Of a stretch of DNA of 32,743 nucleotides, positions 2,206 to 9,195 are shown one piece after another. Position 1 is the first letter of the stretch. Each line of letters begins with the position of its first letter. The notes beneath the pieces are model-generated. The model worked only from the letters and a program-made list of their open reading frames with translations. It made no database searches and was not told the DNA's origin. The position numbers and the translations under genes were made by a program. The stretch comes from Pelomyxa schiedti. Its lineage: Eukaryota > Protista > Evosea. Location of the stretch: the NCBI GenBank assembly GCA_020536535.1, contig JAHLWZ010000989.1, positions 1 to 32,743 on the forward strand, given 5' to 3'.

Positions 2206-4537
2206 CTACCAGTACAGAAGTGCCTCTTGTTTGGCTAACCACCAGGCAGTCTCCGTAGAACTTGGATAGTCAGGACTATCCTGGAGGCCGCGGCATAACT
2301 CAACAATGCACTGGTAGGTGACTCCCAACTTTTGGACTGTGTGTTCAATGTGGAGTGGTGATACTGTAACAAAAGGCAGGAACTTGTCTTGGGTCCTGAT
2401 AACCTTGGCAGTTAGGCCAGGAAACTTTCTCAGCAGCATTTTCCACGTGGGAAGGCTGATTTGCCTAAACGAAGCATGCAATTGGTCCCGCGGCATGTTT
2501 ATAACCTAGATTGATTTAGTGAGTTTCAAACTGTTGTGAGGTATGGAAGAATACCTCGGAAAGAGTGATGTAAAAATTGTCAATCAACCACTCAGCGCAA
2601 CCCACCTTGGAAAAGCTCAGCAACTGGAAGAACAAGTGGTTGGTGTTTGCCTTGACCTGGTCTGGTGTCAGGTGATATGTTTGAATCAACCACTTGACAA
2701 CTTTGCTTGAAAATCCTTTGGTTCCACTCTCTGTTAAGCATTTCACAACCTGCGATTGTGTGATTTCGCTTATGGCAATTATTTCTTTTGCTGAGGAGAT
2801 ATCTGCCATTCCGATTGCCATTCTCAGCAATTTCTTCATCTGACTGCGGATCGTGACATTCCCAAGGGGGATATGAAGCTTCTTCAACAGGTACAGAGCA
2901 CCACTTAAATTACCTGTCTCTAATAGTCTCTGAACTGATTCAGCCATTTCAGTTTCTTCAAAACGGCCCACTGGAACACGTTGGCAGAACCACTCTAGTG
3001 CTGCGAACCCAGAATAAGAACGTTCTGCAACACTCTCCAATCCAATCCAAGCATTCTCTATGTCTTCGGTATTTTTAAGTGCTCTTTCTATATAGTGATA
3101 AGTGTCTTCCAGCCACGTGGAAACTGAAAGGTTTGCTGCTCCCAGTGCTGCTCTAACGGATCCATCAATTATTTCCGGAGGCAAATCCCCTGCAACGTGG
3201 TGCACCATGCATTTCACTACTGACACACTATCCTTGCTGTTTTCACATGCAACTGGAATATTCTCTGGTTCGGAGACCATGGAGAAATCTTTGAATAACC
3301 ACTCCAGGAGGTCAGGTTCACATATACGGAAGAAGGCGCTGCGCAAACTCGTTTTAGATGGCTTCACGGCACCGCTCTGAATCAGCCACCTCAGCGTCTG
3401 CTCCTCGTACACGGGAACCTGCTCCCACTGCATCGACGGCATCGCCCTCATGAGCCACTTGCACGCTTCAATCTTTTCATCGGCACTCCGCATGCTCTTG
3501 AGAAGGTTGCACGCGATCACGGCCTGCAAGCCGGCCGCGCTCTCGCCGGTTCTCGGCGGGAATCTTTCGAACACCCACTTGATGACCTCCAAGCACCCGC
3601 CTTCGGCAGCGCACTGAGGAAATGGGTGCCACGCAAGCATCTCGCACGCGGAGGGAATGTCGAAGAGCCCGGCGAGCCACTCCACCACGTCGATGTGGCC
3701 CCCGCACAGCGCGGCCATGAACGCGTGGAAGAAATACAGCTCGCCGATGCGGAACCTGGACACGAGCCACTTTGCGGTCTCGAGGTGCCCGGCGCGGCAG
3801 ACGCTGCACAGCAAAGTGTTGCTGCTCCCTTTGCCTTCGTATGGCATGGTCGCGGCCACCAACTCGTCCCTCAGGTTCCAGTCACTGTCTCCGCCGTCGT
3901 CCTCTGGCCAGCGGAGATGGCTCCCGGCCGCCCAGGGTCTCCCATAAGTGGAATCGGTGGTGCCAGTGGTGTGGGGATCGGGGCCGGCGAATTGCTCGGC
4001 TGTTGGCAGGTGCCCCGCGACGCAGAGGCCACGCAGCACGGCGAGGCACTCCTTGTGGGGGTGGTGGCGCGGGGGTGACTTATGGGACACGATCCAGGAC
4101 ACGCAGCGGCCGTCGCCGCAGGCCTCGGCCGCGCACTGCAGGGCAAAGTAGGACGAGCGGTACTTGATGTGCTGGTAGCCGCGCACATTCACGCCTGCGG
4201 TGGCGAGCACGGCGCGGCAGGCCATGGGCACGAGCGGGAACAAGGCCTCGGCTACGGTCAGAAGCAAAACGCAGCGCTTGTGGGACAGCGGCCTCCGGTA
4301 GGGCTCAGAAAAGGGACGAACTATGGGAGGACGGCCCAGCAACCACCCAGGCAACACCACGTCGGTCCATACAATACGGGAAACAGACACAACAATACTT
4401 CTCTGTTCCAACACAACACAACTCATCGTTAGGGGAAAAGATCTCCTGAACCTCCACACCTTCTCTGGACCCGTCCATGTCTTCCCGCCACCCATACTTC
4501 TGGAGAAAACATCAGAAAAGAAGGGGAGAGTCGGCAT
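2206..4537 (-). CDS. Lineage-specific ankyrin-like repeat protein (2 exons)
   Basis: Long ORF 2516-4597 with degenerate ankyrin-like repeats (CRAGHLETAKWLV, ALCGGHIDVVEWL, AAEGGCLEVIKWV). A phase-0 intron at ~2507-2553 joins it to the 2206-2506 exon. It is collinear with the paralog at 11134-13544. The start is uncertain; the first ATG is at 4537. Confidence 0.8.
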
Positions 4538-5194
4538 CTCTGGCGTGCCAAGTTGTGGTTTTAGGAGAAGAAAAGAGTTTATCAGAACAAAACGCACAGC
4601 CGTAATGATGGCCCAATGCCACCCATAGCCACCGTGATAATATTATCCTCCTCTTGTCGCACACACACGATGCGATGACACTCGAGAAAGCACAAATTTG
4701 TTGGTCGACCGTCCTGTTCCGTTAGGCGAGAATTGTGGATTTTCCAAACCGCACATACGCCGGCCACAAGATCGGATCTTCAGTCAGTGTTGCACACAAC
4801 GCAATAGCGCATTGCTGAACAGCCCACATTGACACCGACCGTATGATTGTTTCTTTTTTTTTGATTGTATCAAAATGAATTTGCCTGCGCACACAACTAA
4901 ACAACCAATTAGACAGACATCTTACGCTAAAATAGATTTTTAGCCACACTCCAAGTCTTAACAGTTGCGCAATTGCTTTCCAAAATTGTAATTAATAATG
5001 CTTTTGAAGGGCAGATCCACCTCTTTCATTTTTTTACACGCGTCGCAGCAAACAACCCGGTACGCAACACAAACGCACCACAAACCCAACCCGTAACGCA
5101 AACACAAACTCCTCGTCGAAAACACATCAACCTGCGTGCTGCGAAACTATTTCCAAGATCCTTCGAAGTGACACTATCGCCAGTGGAATAGACT

Positions 5195-5426
5195 ATTGCA
5201 CCTCGCGGAAGGAAGCAGAGACTCGAGGGAGGGCGGTGGGACAGTCCTGTCAACCGTCAAAAAACTCAAACTCCCCGGCAATGCAATGCGTGCACTCACT
5301 CCCACAGTGGTACTGGTACTGGCACTGACACTGACTTGGAGGCTTTGGGGAGCAAGGGCAGTGGCCGTTTTTGAGGGTGGCGGCGAGGACTGGGCTGTCC
5401 GCTGCGTACACTCTCTTCCCTGCAAT
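5195..5426 (+). ncRNA. Candidate long rod-like hairpin RNA (array unit A)
   Basis: Nested helices: ATTGCA/TGCAAT (5195/5421), GGAAG/CTTCC, GCGG/CCGC, CAGTCCT/AGGACTG (5242/5386), TCAAAAA/TTTTTGA (5257/5368), CTCCCC/GGGGAG (5271/5347), CAGTG/CACTG. Confidence 0.45.
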
Positions 5427-5664
5427 GCAGCAATGGGCTATATGGACTACCTACGATAATTTACGTACACCTTGGGCACTTGTATAGGAATGAGGACTTG
5501 TCACAATACATATATATTGGCGGCAGTATATCCACTTCCTTCATTTTGTTTTACTAACTGTTCCATGAGATACAAATTCCCGACCTTTTGCGAAGCTCGA
5601 ATAATATTGGGGCATTTCATTCCCGTTTTAAACATATTCATTTTTTTCCCAATAGGTACTTTTT

Positions 5665-5857
5665 CCCTTGAGGACCCCCATAGCGTGGGCTGATGGTGGT
5701 GTCATTTTGCGGGCTCCCCCTTGGGCTCATCACAGCCAGTCGTGTGCTCGATCTGCAGCGGCGGCATGGATGTGTTGGGCTCTCCCCTTTTTCGCCCGCA
5801 GGATGCACCCATCCATCAGATATCCCAGTGCTAGAACTCAAAGGGGTCTCTCTTGGG
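5665..5857 (+). ncRNA. Candidate long rod-like hairpin RNA (array unit B)
   Basis: Nested helices: GACCCC/GGGGTC, TAGCG/TGCTA, TGGG/CCCA, CTGATGG/CCATCAG, CATTTTGCGGGC/GCCCGCAGGATG, GGGCTCA/TGGGCTC, CACA/TGTG. G-U pairs favour the + strand. Confidence 0.55.
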
Positions 5858-6062
5858 TTTCTCTCACACTCACTGTGGAGTCGATTGCGCTTCGGCAGTA
5901 TATACAATCCCTTCATACAGTTTTACTAACTGTTCCATGAGATACAAATTCCCGACCTCTCGCGGAGCTCGAATAATATTGGAAAATTTCCTTCACAATT
6001 TTGTTCTCATCATCGAAATAGATTTCATTTCCCCAATGGGTGCTTTTTTCCTTCCATTCCCA

Positions 6063-6250
6063 CCTTGAGGACCCCCATAGCGTGGGCTGATGGTGGTGCA
6101 TTCTGCGGGCTCCCCCTTGGGCTCATCGCAGCCACTTTTCGTGACGTGTGCTCGATCTGCAGCGGCGGCATGGATGTGTTGAGCTATCCCCTTTTCGCCC
6201 GCAGGATGCACCCATCCCCAGTGCTAGAACTCAAAGGGGTCTCTCTTGGG
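6063..6250 (+). ncRNA. Candidate long rod-like hairpin RNA (array unit C, duplicate of B)
   Basis: Same fold as unit B, including a continuous GGTGCATTCTGCGGGC/GCCCGCAGGATGCACC helix. Three substitutions relative to B keep pairing. Confidence 0.55.
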
Positions 6251-6583
6251 TCTCTCTCACACTCACTGTGAGTGGAGTGGAGTCGAGTCACCATCACTCG
6301 AAACAAAGCAGTATCAAATCCCCTCAATCTCACTACTAAACAAAATAATAGCACACCCCTTTATTACCAAGAAGCTGATTTTCCTCCGATATCTACGCGT
6401 TTATTCATGTTTTATCCCCCCATTCTTCACATAATTGAGTTCTCTGTGCGGTGCACTGTAGTAGATTAATAAGAGGTTGAAATTTTCTATCTATTTTGGT
6501 TAAGTAACCACATCCCATCCAGCGACTGTGATGTCATTGTTATCGTCATTGTCATCAAGGGGGGTCTCCATGGAGTCACACGT

Positions 6584-6776
6584 GTGCCGGTGGAACCTTG
6601 GAAAATATGAAGGCTAAAAAAGGTCTTTCACTTCCGCAAGAAAAACCACCCATTAACATTTTTTAGTAGGTAGGAAATTTTGCGGAATGTAAGTCGGTAG
6701 CAAAGAAGATGATTGAAGAAGAATAGACTTCATATGCGAAGGTAATCCTCCCTCTGGTGGGTTTCACTGTTTGCAC
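6584..6776 (+). ncRNA. Candidate long hairpin RNA (array unit D)
   Basis: Nested helices: GTGC/GCAC, CGGTGGAACC/GGTTTCACTG (6588/6760), ATATGAAG/CTTCATAT (6605/6728), TCTTT/AAAGA, TTCCGCAAGA/TTTTGCGGAA (6632/6678). Confidence 0.45.
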
Positions 6777-7134
6777 CGCTTACCACCTCAAGGTAGATGC
6801 TTTTGACAATCAGAGAGCACAGCTAGGCAATGGAGTCACTCACACACTCAAGGAACAACAACCTCAACAACAACACACGCTATCACACAGGAACATCCAA
6901 GAGTGCAAATGAATGCACTCTCCTACTCACACATCGTCCCCCCGACACTCCAAACACGGGGTGGTTGTCATAATAAAATGTTTCTGTTTGCAAGATAAAA
7001 TTCAACAGTAGTTATTTCCTGCTTGCCAAAACATTAACCCTTAGTTCAGCCAATCTCCAAGAGCTACTGAAACTGTCTTCCGAACTACTCAAGATCGATG
7101 ACAACAGCACTCTACTTCGTCGAAAAGCACCATA

Positions 7135-8967
7135 ATGTTGTCGGCCCACGACGGGTGCGTGTCGTTCCTCGGCGTCGACGCGTACTCAGAGACGTCGTCC
7201 AGCGCAGCTACGTCGTCAGCGCCCCCGGGCGCCGGCGACCGCTTCGTCCCCACGCTGCTGCGCTCGTCCTCGTCGGAGCTGGAAGCCGCGCACAGGGAGG
7301 TGCTCGCGGCGGAGGCGGAGGCCGAGGCGGCCATGCGGCGGCTCACTCTCACGGGGCCCGACGACGACCTCGTGCGGCCGCCGCCGGGTGACGACGCCAC
7401 GGGCGCGCAGGGGAGTACTGCCAAAAGGGCGTATATAAGGGCCGTCGAAGCTGCCTTGTGCAACAATACAACGGTTGGGTTTTCGTTTGTTTTATGGGGT
7501 TTTTGGGTTTTTCGCCTCCCTCTCGTAAATTTTAGTTGATTCTATGCCGATTGTATTACGTTCTGACATAGTACCCTCCAAAAACCAGAAAAAGGTTCTC
7601 AGTTTCTCACCTGCCAAGCCTACAAAAGGAATTAACATGCCCGTTAGTACATTGGGGTCATCAAGCAGGACCTCTTCATTCAGCAAGTGCGAACACATTG
7701 ACTTCTGAAAGTTTCTTATATGAACTTGTTCTGTTTTTCACTTTCTGGTTTATCAATATTGAACAGGAACCCCCGTTCCGTACCTCAAGCACCAGAGAGG
7801 GTGCTGGATGCACCTGGTTTACAGGATAACTATTACCTTAATGTGCTTGACTGGGGCACTCACTACCTTGCTATTGGCCTTTCTTGTTTTGTTTATTTGT
7901 GGTCACCTACTATTGCCGAAGCAGTACAGCTTTTGCAGACTTCAGAAGACAATTGTATCTCAGCTGTAAAGTGGGCAGGGTCTTCTTCCTTTCTAGCTGT
8001 TGCTACAAACAGTGGTCAGTCTCTCATACAGTATTCAATTTTCTGACTATCTCTCCTTGGCAAGGTGACATACAGATTTGGACAGCAAAACAAGATTCAT
8101 TTAAGCAACTTCGCACTATTCGAGGTCACACTAGTTGTGTGTGCTCTTTATCATGGGCAGGAAATTTGTTGGCTAGTGGGGCAAAGGATGGCACTATTAT
8201 GATCAGTGATGTGAGTAGACGACCTCATGAGGTGGCCATTTTAAGACACCACACTGATCAAGTGTGTGGGTTAATCTGGTCTCCAAGTCAAACCCAGCTT
8301 GCTAGTGGGGGGAATGATAGTTGTGTTGCAGTATGGGAGCCACATAGGTGTGCAACAGCACCAATGGTTGTTCTGACACTCCACACTGCTGCTGTGAAAG
8401 CACTTTCGTGGTGTCCCTGGGAGGTTGTGTTTCGCCTGTCATTTTTACCTCACTGACCACCAGTCAAGCCCAATATCCTTGCTACAGGAGGCGGTTATGC
8501 AGATAAGTGTATACGAATTTGGAATACATCTACTGGTTCCTGTCTACAATGCATCACTACCAACTCACAGGTGACATCTATTATGTGGTCCGTTGAGTAC
8601 CAGGAGCTTATTTCTTCCCACGGGTGAGTGGCTTTTCTTTTGGAAATTTTAACAACCTACAGAGCCCCAGACTGCCAGCTTTCACTTTGGAAGTACCCAA
8701 CAATGGAAAAGGTTGGTGATATCTTGGGGCACGATGACCGAATTCTCCACACAACAAGAAGTCCTGATGGCAGCATTGTGGTTTCTGCAAGTACTGACGA
8801 AACCATAAGGTATTAACGCTGGTTCTTATGCACAACACACTCACTTGAATGAAAGGTTTTGGTCCGTTTGGCCACCACAAAAACCCCACAAGACTATAAA
8901 TAAAAGTAACACTACTCGGCTCCGCTCTAGGAGTGCTTCGGGCTTCAGCTCAAGGGGATTGAGATGA
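7135..8967 (+). CDS. CDC20: APC/C co-activator Cdc20/Fizzy (WD40), multi-exon
   Basis: C-box-like DRFVP; KVLSF (KILR-like); PERVLDAPGLQDNYYLNVLDWG; LASGGND; HTAAVKALSWCPW; LWKYPTMEKV; SPDGSIVVSASTDETIRFW; ends in GLR-stop. Confidence 0.92.
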
Positions 8968-9195
8968 ACCCGGCTATACATACATAGAACTTATACATAT
9001 TTACACCGCTTCGAAAACAAGAAGGCACTTGGTTTTCATTTTTCAGCATTTCAGTAATAGAACCTCATTCTTTTTTTTTCTGTTGGCATATTTGAAAGAA
9101 AGAGAGAAGGAGCAACACAACCAAGCAAGCAACACCCAAAGTAGGAAGTCTCCAAAAAACCCACAAGCACAAGACAAAGAGAAGAGTAAGCAAGA

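Follow-up and report, generated by a model that had tools for sequence, protein, structure and literature searches.

A multi-copy, multi-intron non-coding RNA gene of Pelomyxa schiedti with a strongly constrained hairpin module

Introduction

Plant MIR genes often hold their hairpin in an exon that precedes an intron, and the foldbacks of miR159/319 have conserved upper stems. In fission yeast the 3′ end of telomerase RNA is made by spliceosomal cleavage. To our knowledge, the non-coding RNA biology of the Archamoebae (Pelomyxa, Mastigamoeba, Entamoeba) is almost unexplored. Here we describe a locus of the anaerobic archamoeba Pelomyxa schiedti at positions 4555–7000 of a 32,743-nucleotide (nt) window, the whole stretch of DNA that was analysed (assembly GCA_020536535.1, contig JAHLWZ010000989.1, forward strand; C989 where contigs are compared). 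The locus is well supported as an undescribed, expressed, multi-copy, multi-intron non-coding RNA (ncRNA) gene with a strongly constrained hairpin module.

Among described systems, the microRNA (miRNA) precursors of Dictyostelium, Acanthamoeba and Physarum belong to the same supergroup (PMC11014262, PMC6161686); the survey of amoebozoan miRNAs covers no Archamoebae (PMC11014262). These precursors resemble the Pelomyxa family in that they are mostly intergenic, form lineage-specific families and include a few of more than 200 nt (PMC11014262, PMC6161686). They are typically 75–125 nt in length (PMC11014262), whereas the hairpins described here measure 173–208 nt, lie in multi-intron transcripts and are present in 15 copies.

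Gene structure and expression

Assembled contigs from three single-cell RNA libraries, all of one sample, were compared with positions 3500–9000 of the window (5,501 letters). The libraries are of the oligo-dT-primed, template-switch (Smart-seq) type, as is shown by the switch oligo at the 5′ end of a neighbouring gene and by an A-tail. The evidence consists of contigs, not reads; it yields no splice ratios, expression levels or measured RNA ends. RNA contigs span 4775–6856; over 3500–4770 and 6860–7920 the same three libraries contain none. Five GT..AG junctions were called in the contigs and a sixth was deduced from a loose end, and these junctions fix the + strand as that of the transcript. 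What an initial annotation, made from the sequence alone, had described as a gene-free gap is thus transcribed and spliced: the locus 4555–7000 is a + strand gene that yields a ∼2 kb spliced RNA without coding capacity. Its parts are as follows.

4555–4775, + strand: conserved upstream block, probably the promoter and the start of exon 1 (homology with C847, C893, C1746 and C234 from ∼4554–4585)
4841–4935, + strand: intron 1, 95 nt, GT..AG (RNA junction 4840>4936, run X1)
4964–5009, + strand: intron 2, 46 nt, GT..AG (RNA junction 4963>5010)
5010–5525, + strand: exon 3, which holds 'hairpin A'
5526–5569, + strand: type I mini-intron (leader B), 44 nt, GTATAT..TACTAAC..AG (spliced in X1 record 1, junction 5525>5570)
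5570–5897, + strand: exon, which holds hairpin B
5898–5941, + strand: type I mini-intron (leader C), 44 nt, predicted from homology to the spliced 5526–5569
5942–6310, + strand: exon, which holds hairpin C
6311–6351, + strand: type II mini-intron (leader D), 41 nt, GTATCA..ACTAAAC..AG, predicted (93–95% identical between the two subfamilies described below)
6476–6522, + strand: intron, 47 nt, GT..AG (in X3 record 10, the 16-nt loose end ahead of 6521 is identical to window positions 6458–6473)
6623–6666, + strand: intron, 44 nt, inside 'hairpin D' (RNA junction 6620>6665, cut +2, X3)
6742–6792, + strand: intron, 51 nt, inside 'hairpin D' (RNA junction 6738>6790, cut +3, X3)
6972–6977, + strand: AATAAA poly(A) signal (family homology stops ∼25–35 nt downstream, near 7000–7010)

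Six of the introns are demonstrated and two (5898–5941 and 6311–6351) are predicted. The first contig begins at 4775, and the contigs capture neither the true 5′ end nor the distal poly(A) site. A TATA-like GATAATATTATCC is found near 4637, inside the upstream block. This block, the AATAAA and the edges of the family are compatible with a promoter and a polyadenylation signal that belong to the gene itself and not to its neighbours. From the splicing, the AATAAA at 6972 and the nine runs of at least five T that lie inside the + strand transcript, we infer that the gene is transcribed by RNA polymerase II (Pol II).

Four related leaders, each followed by a hairpin, had been proposed in the initial annotation. 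Those at 5522, 5894 and 6308 are related, with GCA/GTAT...ACTAA(C/A)...AG in common (the stroke marks the exon–intron boundary); at 5010, directly after intron 4964–5009, exon 3 begins, and the leader placed there has no GT. Leader B is the spliced 44-nt intron (GTATAT...TTTTACTAAC...CATGAG); its junction 5525>5570 has 126 nt aligned on the shorter side in X1 record 1, and the intron is kept in the paralogues. Leader C is a near-copy of leader B, and leader D is of a second intron type (GTATCA...ACTAAAC...AATAG). Because leaders C and D are unspliced in contigs that cross them (5898–5941 in X1 record 2, contig 5719–6092; 6311–6351 in X3 records 7 and 9 and also in a contig from the C940 paralogue), they are rated as predicted introns that are at least often retained. 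Rather than leader or promoter elements of separate small genes, as had been supposed, these segments are mini-introns of one ∼2 kb spliced transcript.

The hairpin module

The minimum free energy (MFE) of each proposed hairpin was compared with that of 200 dinucleotide shuffles on the + strand, and B and C were also folded on the − strand. The hairpins, together with the conserved blocks and the RNA end discussed below, are as follows.

5665–5857, + strand: hairpin module B (MFE −96.1 kcal/mol, z −4.99, 0/200 shuffles as good; covariance model 229 bits)
6063–6250, + strand: hairpin module C (MFE −88.6 kcal/mol, z −3.95, 0/200 shuffles as good; covariance model 220 bits)
5195–5426, + strand: 'hairpin A' (z −0.74; 51/200 shuffles fold as well)
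6584–6776, + strand: 'hairpin D', unsupported as an RNA hairpin (z −2.08 genomic, −1.3 after splicing; split by two demonstrated introns)
5672–5696 in B and 6069–6093 in C, + strand: invariant block 1, basal 5′ arm (10 matches: 8 exact, 2 with one mismatch)
5741–5765 in B and 6145–6169 in C, + strand: invariant block 2, apex (14 matches, 13 exact, all in the family)
5824–5850 in B and 6217–6243 in C, + strand: invariant block 3, basal 3′ arm with a 9-nt bulge (15 matches, 14 exact, all in the family)
6151, + strand: RNA 3′ end with the tail CC + A23 (X1 record 3, perfect match to copy C over 6063–6151)

Two of the four hairpins proposed initially, B and C, stand up to the shuffling test, and the + strand preference claimed for all four is retained for these two, the − strand folds of which are weaker (z −3.46 and −3.12, 9–15 kcal/mol less stable). 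Units B (5521–5893) and C (5893–6279) were correctly recognized as duplicates: they are tandem copies with ∼81% identity overall and 88% in the hairpin. The complete hairpin C is contained in one RNA contig (X3 record 7, 5957–6329). 'Hairpin D' is cut by introns and 'hairpin A' folds no better than many of its shuffles, so that neither counts as a hairpin. That A and D share no obvious sequence with B and C was confirmed with an nhmmer profile of 11 unit copies, which finds two units only in 4500–7100 and gives A and D E > 1; A and D are not recovered as diverged B/C units. The repeated architecture is therefore that of a tandem pair and not of a four-unit array, and of the cassette envisaged earlier, with conserved leader and fold and variable sequence, the tandem expansion, the leader and the fold remain, while the sequence of B and C is extremely conserved.

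The paralogues of 'hairpin A' have z-scores of −0.3 to −2.8 and competing folds. Their alignment fold keeps ∼30 mid-stem pairs, which makes a conserved stem segment within 'hairpin A' possible; its covariation term is near zero and the z-scores are not significant, and a rescue of the whole hairpin through covariation was rejected. At the top of 'hairpin A', positions 5306–5335 form a (GTACTG/GCACTG)n microsatellite-like run that varies in length or is deleted among the family copies, and in the C820 copy ∼140 nt of the apex are missing.

A covariance model built from 14 copies was used to search the P. schiedti assembly (52,367,397 bases in 5,337 contigs). Exactly 15 hairpins are found genome-wide, with sense scores of 79–262 bits and antisense scores of at most 21 bits. 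They are exonic, ∼190 nt long (173–208 nt), with one or two per transcript and two in C989. In all 14 full copies the z-score of the transcribed strand is −3.8 to −7.4 and lower than that of the opposite strand; the + strand is preferred in 14/14 paralogous hairpins by z-score and in 12/14 by energy.

Conservation is concentrated in three blocks of 25–27 nt, which show 0–2 differences in any copy. Block 1, GGACCCCCATAGCGTGGGCTGATGG, is exact in 8/10 hairpins of the first subfamily and has one extra G in the second; block 2, CGTGTGCTCGATCTGCAGCGGCGGC, is exact in 13/14 matches, and block 3, CCCAGTGCTAGAACTCAAAGGGGTCTC, in 14/15. When the three blocks were searched against the genome on either strand with up to three mismatches, no site outside the family was found; the search for complementarity of the hairpin arms, as had been proposed, was carried out for these three blocks, and all of its matches are confined to the family. 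Near-invariant blocks beside unalignable flanks exclude neutrality.

The predicted fold has a base made of blocks 1 and 3, in which two helices enclose an invariant 9-nt bulge (GAACUCAAA, part of block 3), and an apex made of block 2, with two mini stem-loops. Asymmetric bulges of 9 and 4 nt lie opposite the conserved basal blocks. The mid stem contains a near-perfect duplex of ∼16 base pairs (bp), in a segment that varies between the subfamilies with its pairing kept. In the helices between base and apex, GCGGGC/GCCCGC corresponds to GCAGGC/GCCUGC, with a G–U intermediate on C847, and one pair runs GC, GU, AU among the copies. As a second example, CUGAUGG is paired with CCAUCAG or CUGUCAG. 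The C/U-rich internal loops differ in length from copy to copy. Standard pairs occupy 98.9% of 803 pair cells, compared with 38–47% when the partners are slid by 1–3 columns, and the covariation score exceeds that of all 500 shuffles. Invariant columns make up 77% of the paired and 38% of the unpaired positions. The independent covariation that can be read from the alignment is thin, since the sequences fall into two clades and the majority of columns show no variation. The predicted 7-nt apical loop UCGAUCU (5748–5754 and 6152–6158) contains the self-complementary tetramers UCGA and GAUC, and loop–loop pairing between hairpins is conceivable.

The hairpins and the mini-introns are linked throughout the genome, as the initial annotation had expected of hairpins and leaders. 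GCA/GTAT lies downstream of 15/15 hairpins at +44 to +70 nt, a type I intron ends 99–127 nt upstream of 9/10 subfamily-1 hairpins, and BLAST queries containing the leaders found them only in loci of the family. The hairpin, however, precedes the intron, and the leader does not exist in the genome as a motif of its own.

One RNA end was found within the module, at position 6151, directly before the predicted apical loop UCGAUCU of hairpin C. The genomic sequence after it is not A-rich and no AAUAAA is present upstream of it. A templated origin of the tail was sought in the genome: the junction has no genomic copy, and a single match with two mismatches lies below the control counts. In run X1 this copy is uncovered downstream of ∼6259. 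The tailed end, a single observation, may mark an RNA that was cut endonucleolytically in the apical loop and then adenylated.

The gene family

The family comprises ∼10 loci in the P. schiedti genome. The complete block, from ∼4555–4585 to ∼7000, recurs on C847, C820, C234, C994 and C1067, and fragments are present at the ends of C893, C1746, C4510 and other contigs; the identity is 76–92%. A second subfamily, on C474 (two hairpins), C2071, C940 and C632, can be aligned with the first only in the hairpin (∼75%), the mini-introns (93–95% over 43 nt) and short pieces of A and D. Homology extends from the conserved upstream block to ∼25–35 nt past the AATAAA, and the flanks differ at every locus; such edges give the family the shape of a gene and not of a transposon. 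The introns are kept in all copies, so the copies were not retroposed. Between close copies the hairpin diverges by 2–4% and most other parts by 5–17%.

The module has been duplicated in two ways, as a 372–397-nt unit (intron, spacer, hairpin) in C989 and C847, and as a ∼800–880-nt unit that includes part of A in C994, C1067 and C474. That paired modules arose by two different tandem duplications suggests that such pairs were selected for more than once, or that the transcripts tend to acquire them.

Two further observations concern the copies. Positions 4576–4695 are ∼76% identical to two sites on the minus strand of locus L026 (C314), 1715–1849 and 4444–4575, which are 2.7 kb apart; the shared segment holds GCCCAGTGCCACCCAAYAGCCACCG and ACACGATGCGATGACAC, the sequence downstream at C314 is unrelated, and 4576–4695 may be a shared promoter or 5′ module. 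The DNA word depth over 4600–7000 (run X4) is 45–131 compared with 26–35 in the unique flanks, that is, 2–4 times higher. Many short X4 contigs over the element carry variant letters, which fits a collapsed multi-copy family, and several copies end assembly contigs.

Coding capacity, known RNA families and neighbouring genes

In the ∼1.9–2.0 kb RNA, with all combinations of the optional introns considered, there is no ATG open reading frame (ORF) of more than 84 amino acids (aa) and no open frame of more than 130 aa. Six aligned copies were examined for codon structure: a period-3 substitution pattern is absent from every exon (p 0.17–1.0), and only 1–7 of the 23–40 indels per copy are divisible by 3. 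Between hairpins B and C, length differences of 1, 8 and 10 nt break every reading frame. Six genomic ORFs of the locus gave no significant match in Pfam. The transcription predicted earlier is confirmed on the + strand, and the RNA, although spliced, shows no sign of coding in its ORFs, periodicity or Pfam matches.

The earlier proposal of a non-coding RNA gene outside Rfam holds. Neither the window as a whole nor three paralogous loci gave an Rfam match at the gathering threshold; with E up to 10, the locus and the hairpin alone gave chance-level matches to snoZ6, mir-2217 and SNORD88 (E 3–4). No tRNA genes were found, and a small-RNA promoter of the DUSE type (TCCCACAATTT-like) has no match with up to two mismatches on either strand of 4300–7100. 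Viral contigs contain neither block 2 nor block 3, and metagenome contigs lack block 3. Block 2 has five metagenome matches; because they lie in bacterial contigs of 65–72% GC, inside unrelated genes (HypA, KdpD), they were taken as chance.

Several known elements were considered for the locus and rejected. For a hammerhead core, the CUGAUGG is paired and lacks the required A. Pol III A and B boxes match poorly and T-runs lie inside the RNA. A CUGCAGC loop of the IRE1 type does not fall within a 7-nt loop of the predicted fold. Resemblance to signal recognition particle (SRP) RNA or 7SK is not supported by Rfam, and telomerase RNA was set aside because the family is multi-copy. A hairpin siRNA (hpRNA) locus was rejected because the arms do not make up an extended, near-perfect inverted repeat and the unit has no matches beyond the family, and a miniature inverted-repeat transposable element (MITE) or other DNA transposon because terminal inverted repeats are lacking, the edges are gene-like and 15/15 hairpins lie in one gene architecture.

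The P. schiedti genome has 7.43 introns per gene, with 98.4% GT–AG introns (PMC8887013). The template-switch oligo places the RNA 5′ end of the right neighbour (7924–9000, + strand) at 7924, and this gene has four confirmed introns of 39–50 nt (8015–8064, 8424–8468, 8624–8662 and 8810–8855), which show that tiny introns are normal in this genome. The left neighbour (2516–4597, − strand) is a 693-aa open frame with weak ankyrin-repeat matches; its part within 3500–4597 has no RNA contigs in the three single-cell runs. It is arranged head-to-head with the ncRNA gene, and the two may share a promoter region.

Interpretation of the hairpin module

Judged by its sequence and predicted fold, the hairpin is best read, tentatively, as an undescribed structured-RNA module recognized by a protein. 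It would act as a folded module that a protein partner reads sequence-specifically, with contacts proposed at the invariant base (the two helices around the 9-nt bulge) and at the invariant apex (the two mini stem-loops). The helices in the middle would act as spacers, kept for their pairing and not for their sequence. Tandem duplication by two different routes would double the number of modules per transcript. The module may at least sometimes be cut in its apical loop and may then serve as a processing site, at which part of the RNA would be released or destroyed. An unchanging bulge and apex, helices maintained through their pairing and spacer loops of variable length are the pattern of protein-recognized structured RNAs, and the intact hairpins in the RNA contigs fit a stable structured RNA. 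Several points weigh against this interpretation. The partner protein is neither known nor inferable from the sequence; the covariation comes from this genome only, in which two clades amount essentially to a single independent compensatory event; the A-tailed end was seen in one cell, in one contig of depth ∼5; a multi-copy gene family is unusual for a scaffold RNA; and a spliced Pol II transcript with several hairpins and a 5′ splice site just downstream is also the layout of a primary miRNA (pri-miRNA) cluster.

The principal rival, which is possible although not favoured, follows from that layout. The transcript would be a polycistronic, spliced, pri-miRNA-like precursor of hairpin small RNAs, cut by a Dicer-like enzyme, possibly from the loop, with products taken up by Argonaute; processing would be helped by the downstream 5′ splice site, as in plant MIR genes. 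The hairpin is stable and strand-asymmetric in 14 copies (z −3.8 to −7.4), one or two are present per spliced transcript, the mid stem offers its near-perfect duplex of ∼16 bp, and one tailed RNA end falls in the apical loop. A Dicer route is made feasible by the gene content of the genome, in which Piwi-domain matches occur at no fewer than four loci (C803, C249, C877 and C848) and RNase III at two (C275 and C866). The C866 locus, L047 (C866:2000–9000, minus strand), is a candidate Dicer-like gene with two RNase III matches and a double-stranded RNA-binding domain (dsRBD) on one strand; on the same strand, an exon of 673 aa matches PAZ weakly (E 0.0018, short of the Pfam threshold). Other Amoebozoa have miRNAs, a few of them from hairpins of more than 200 nt, although the usual amoebozoan pre-miRNA has 75–125 nt and not 173–208 nt (PMC11014262). 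The structure itself speaks less for such a precursor: the invariant blocks face the asymmetric bulges of 9 and 4 nt, the best duplex region differs between the subfamilies by compensatory change, no duplex with few mismatches and free of large asymmetric bulges is conserved among the paralogues, and a 25-nt invariant apex is unusual. The three blocks have no antisense target in the genome with up to three mismatches, and whole hairpins persist in contigs from oligo-dT-primed libraries. It is rather doubtful, but conceivable, that the hairpin is the functional element of a new, lineage-specific RNA class of Archamoebae, in which a ∼190-nt exonic module flanked by ultra-conserved mini-introns would be freed from a multi-copy host transcript by splicing-coupled or endonucleolytic processing (the apical-loop cut). 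The freed module would then give rise to miRNA-like small RNAs, the first in this lineage, or else to a stable ribonucleoprotein RNA of a kind not known before.

The remaining explanations are improbable to different degrees. A purely cis-acting element, by which the hairpin and mini-introns control the splicing or 3′-end formation of their own transcript (intron retention, hairpin-directed cleavage) with no function in trans, is unlikely. It would account for mini-introns as conserved as the hairpin (93–95% between the subfamilies over 43 nt), for the fixed spacing of 44–70 nt between hairpin and 5′ splice site in 15/15 cases, for the retention of two of the three leader-type introns in contigs while one is spliced, and for X1 coverage of this copy that stops at the tailed end 6151; it leaves unexplained why ∼10 loci of a non-coding transcript are maintained and why 77 hairpin positions are fixed, and splice ratios are not derivable from contigs. 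Slightly less probable still is a dispersed repeat, selfish or neutral (for instance a non-autonomous transposon or a set of segmental duplicates), transcribed by chance, with the hairpin as a relic palindrome. The copies are multiple and dispersed, many lie at contig ends, the DNA depth is 2–4 times that of the flanks, and internal tandem duplications and large indels occur. Terminal inverted repeats and a genomic poly(A) tail are lacking, however, introns are kept in all copies, and the edges are the conserved upstream block and AATAAA of a gene. The arms are not an inverted repeat at the DNA level (no inverted pairs at seed 9, 16-nt pieces only at seed 8), the level of conservation differs greatly along the sequence, where blocks of no more than two differences lie beside unalignable flanks, and the covariance-model scan found no hairpin outside the family context. 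Last, an ordinary protein-coding gene, or the untranslated region (UTR) of a neighbour, overlooked because its exons are short, is very improbable and largely refuted. The many splice sites are those expected of protein genes in this intron-rich genome (PMC8887013), but no splice combination has a long ORF, codon periodicity is absent, indels shift the frame and Pfam gives no significant match; the left neighbour is on the opposite strand, the right neighbour starts at a 5′ end of its own (7924) and the flanking sequence is different at each paralogous locus.

With the protein-recognized module as the preferred reading, the locus provides a concrete, expressed and strongly constrained RNA module with 15 natural variants, two subfamilies and a defined gene structure. 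It shows that the 'empty' gaps of a compact, intron-rich genome can conceal multi-intron non-coding genes, and that introns of ∼45 nt can be under stronger constraint than the surrounding exons. If the gene is only a structured long ncRNA, it is a modest addition to the annotation.

Comparison with known systems

MITE-type and inverted-duplication hairpins (hpRNA) are, like the present module, long fold-backs in transcribed, repeated DNA. Here the arms are imperfect, terminal repeats and target duplications are absent, a single gene context is found and G–U pairs favour one strand.

The telomerase RNA of fission yeast has a structured domain directly upstream of a conserved 5′ splice site, as has the Pelomyxa transcript, and such a site could define a 3′ end. 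The Pelomyxa gene differs in that it is multi-copy, has no identified template region, has one such intron fully spliced and shows no sign of release after the first splicing step.

Plant polycistronic MIR genes are closer in layout: both are spliced, non-coding Pol II transcripts that can hold more than one imperfect exonic hairpin with an intron just downstream. With miR159/miR319 the module has in common a foldback of ∼180–200 nt in which the base and the upper part are conserved. Differences from plant MIR genes are the 9-nt bulge in the conserved base, which a miRNA duplex would not tolerate, an invariant apical loop region, the lack of targets found for the blocks and the lack of any sequence relation.

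The Drosophila roX stem-loops and the Xist A-repeat share with the Pelomyxa gene a repeated, conserved structured module in a spliced ncRNA, and on both sides the helices are kept by pairing while short sequence motifs are fixed. roX and Xist are single-copy genes with short modules and known partners, whereas the Pelomyxa family has ∼10 loci and a module of 190 nt.

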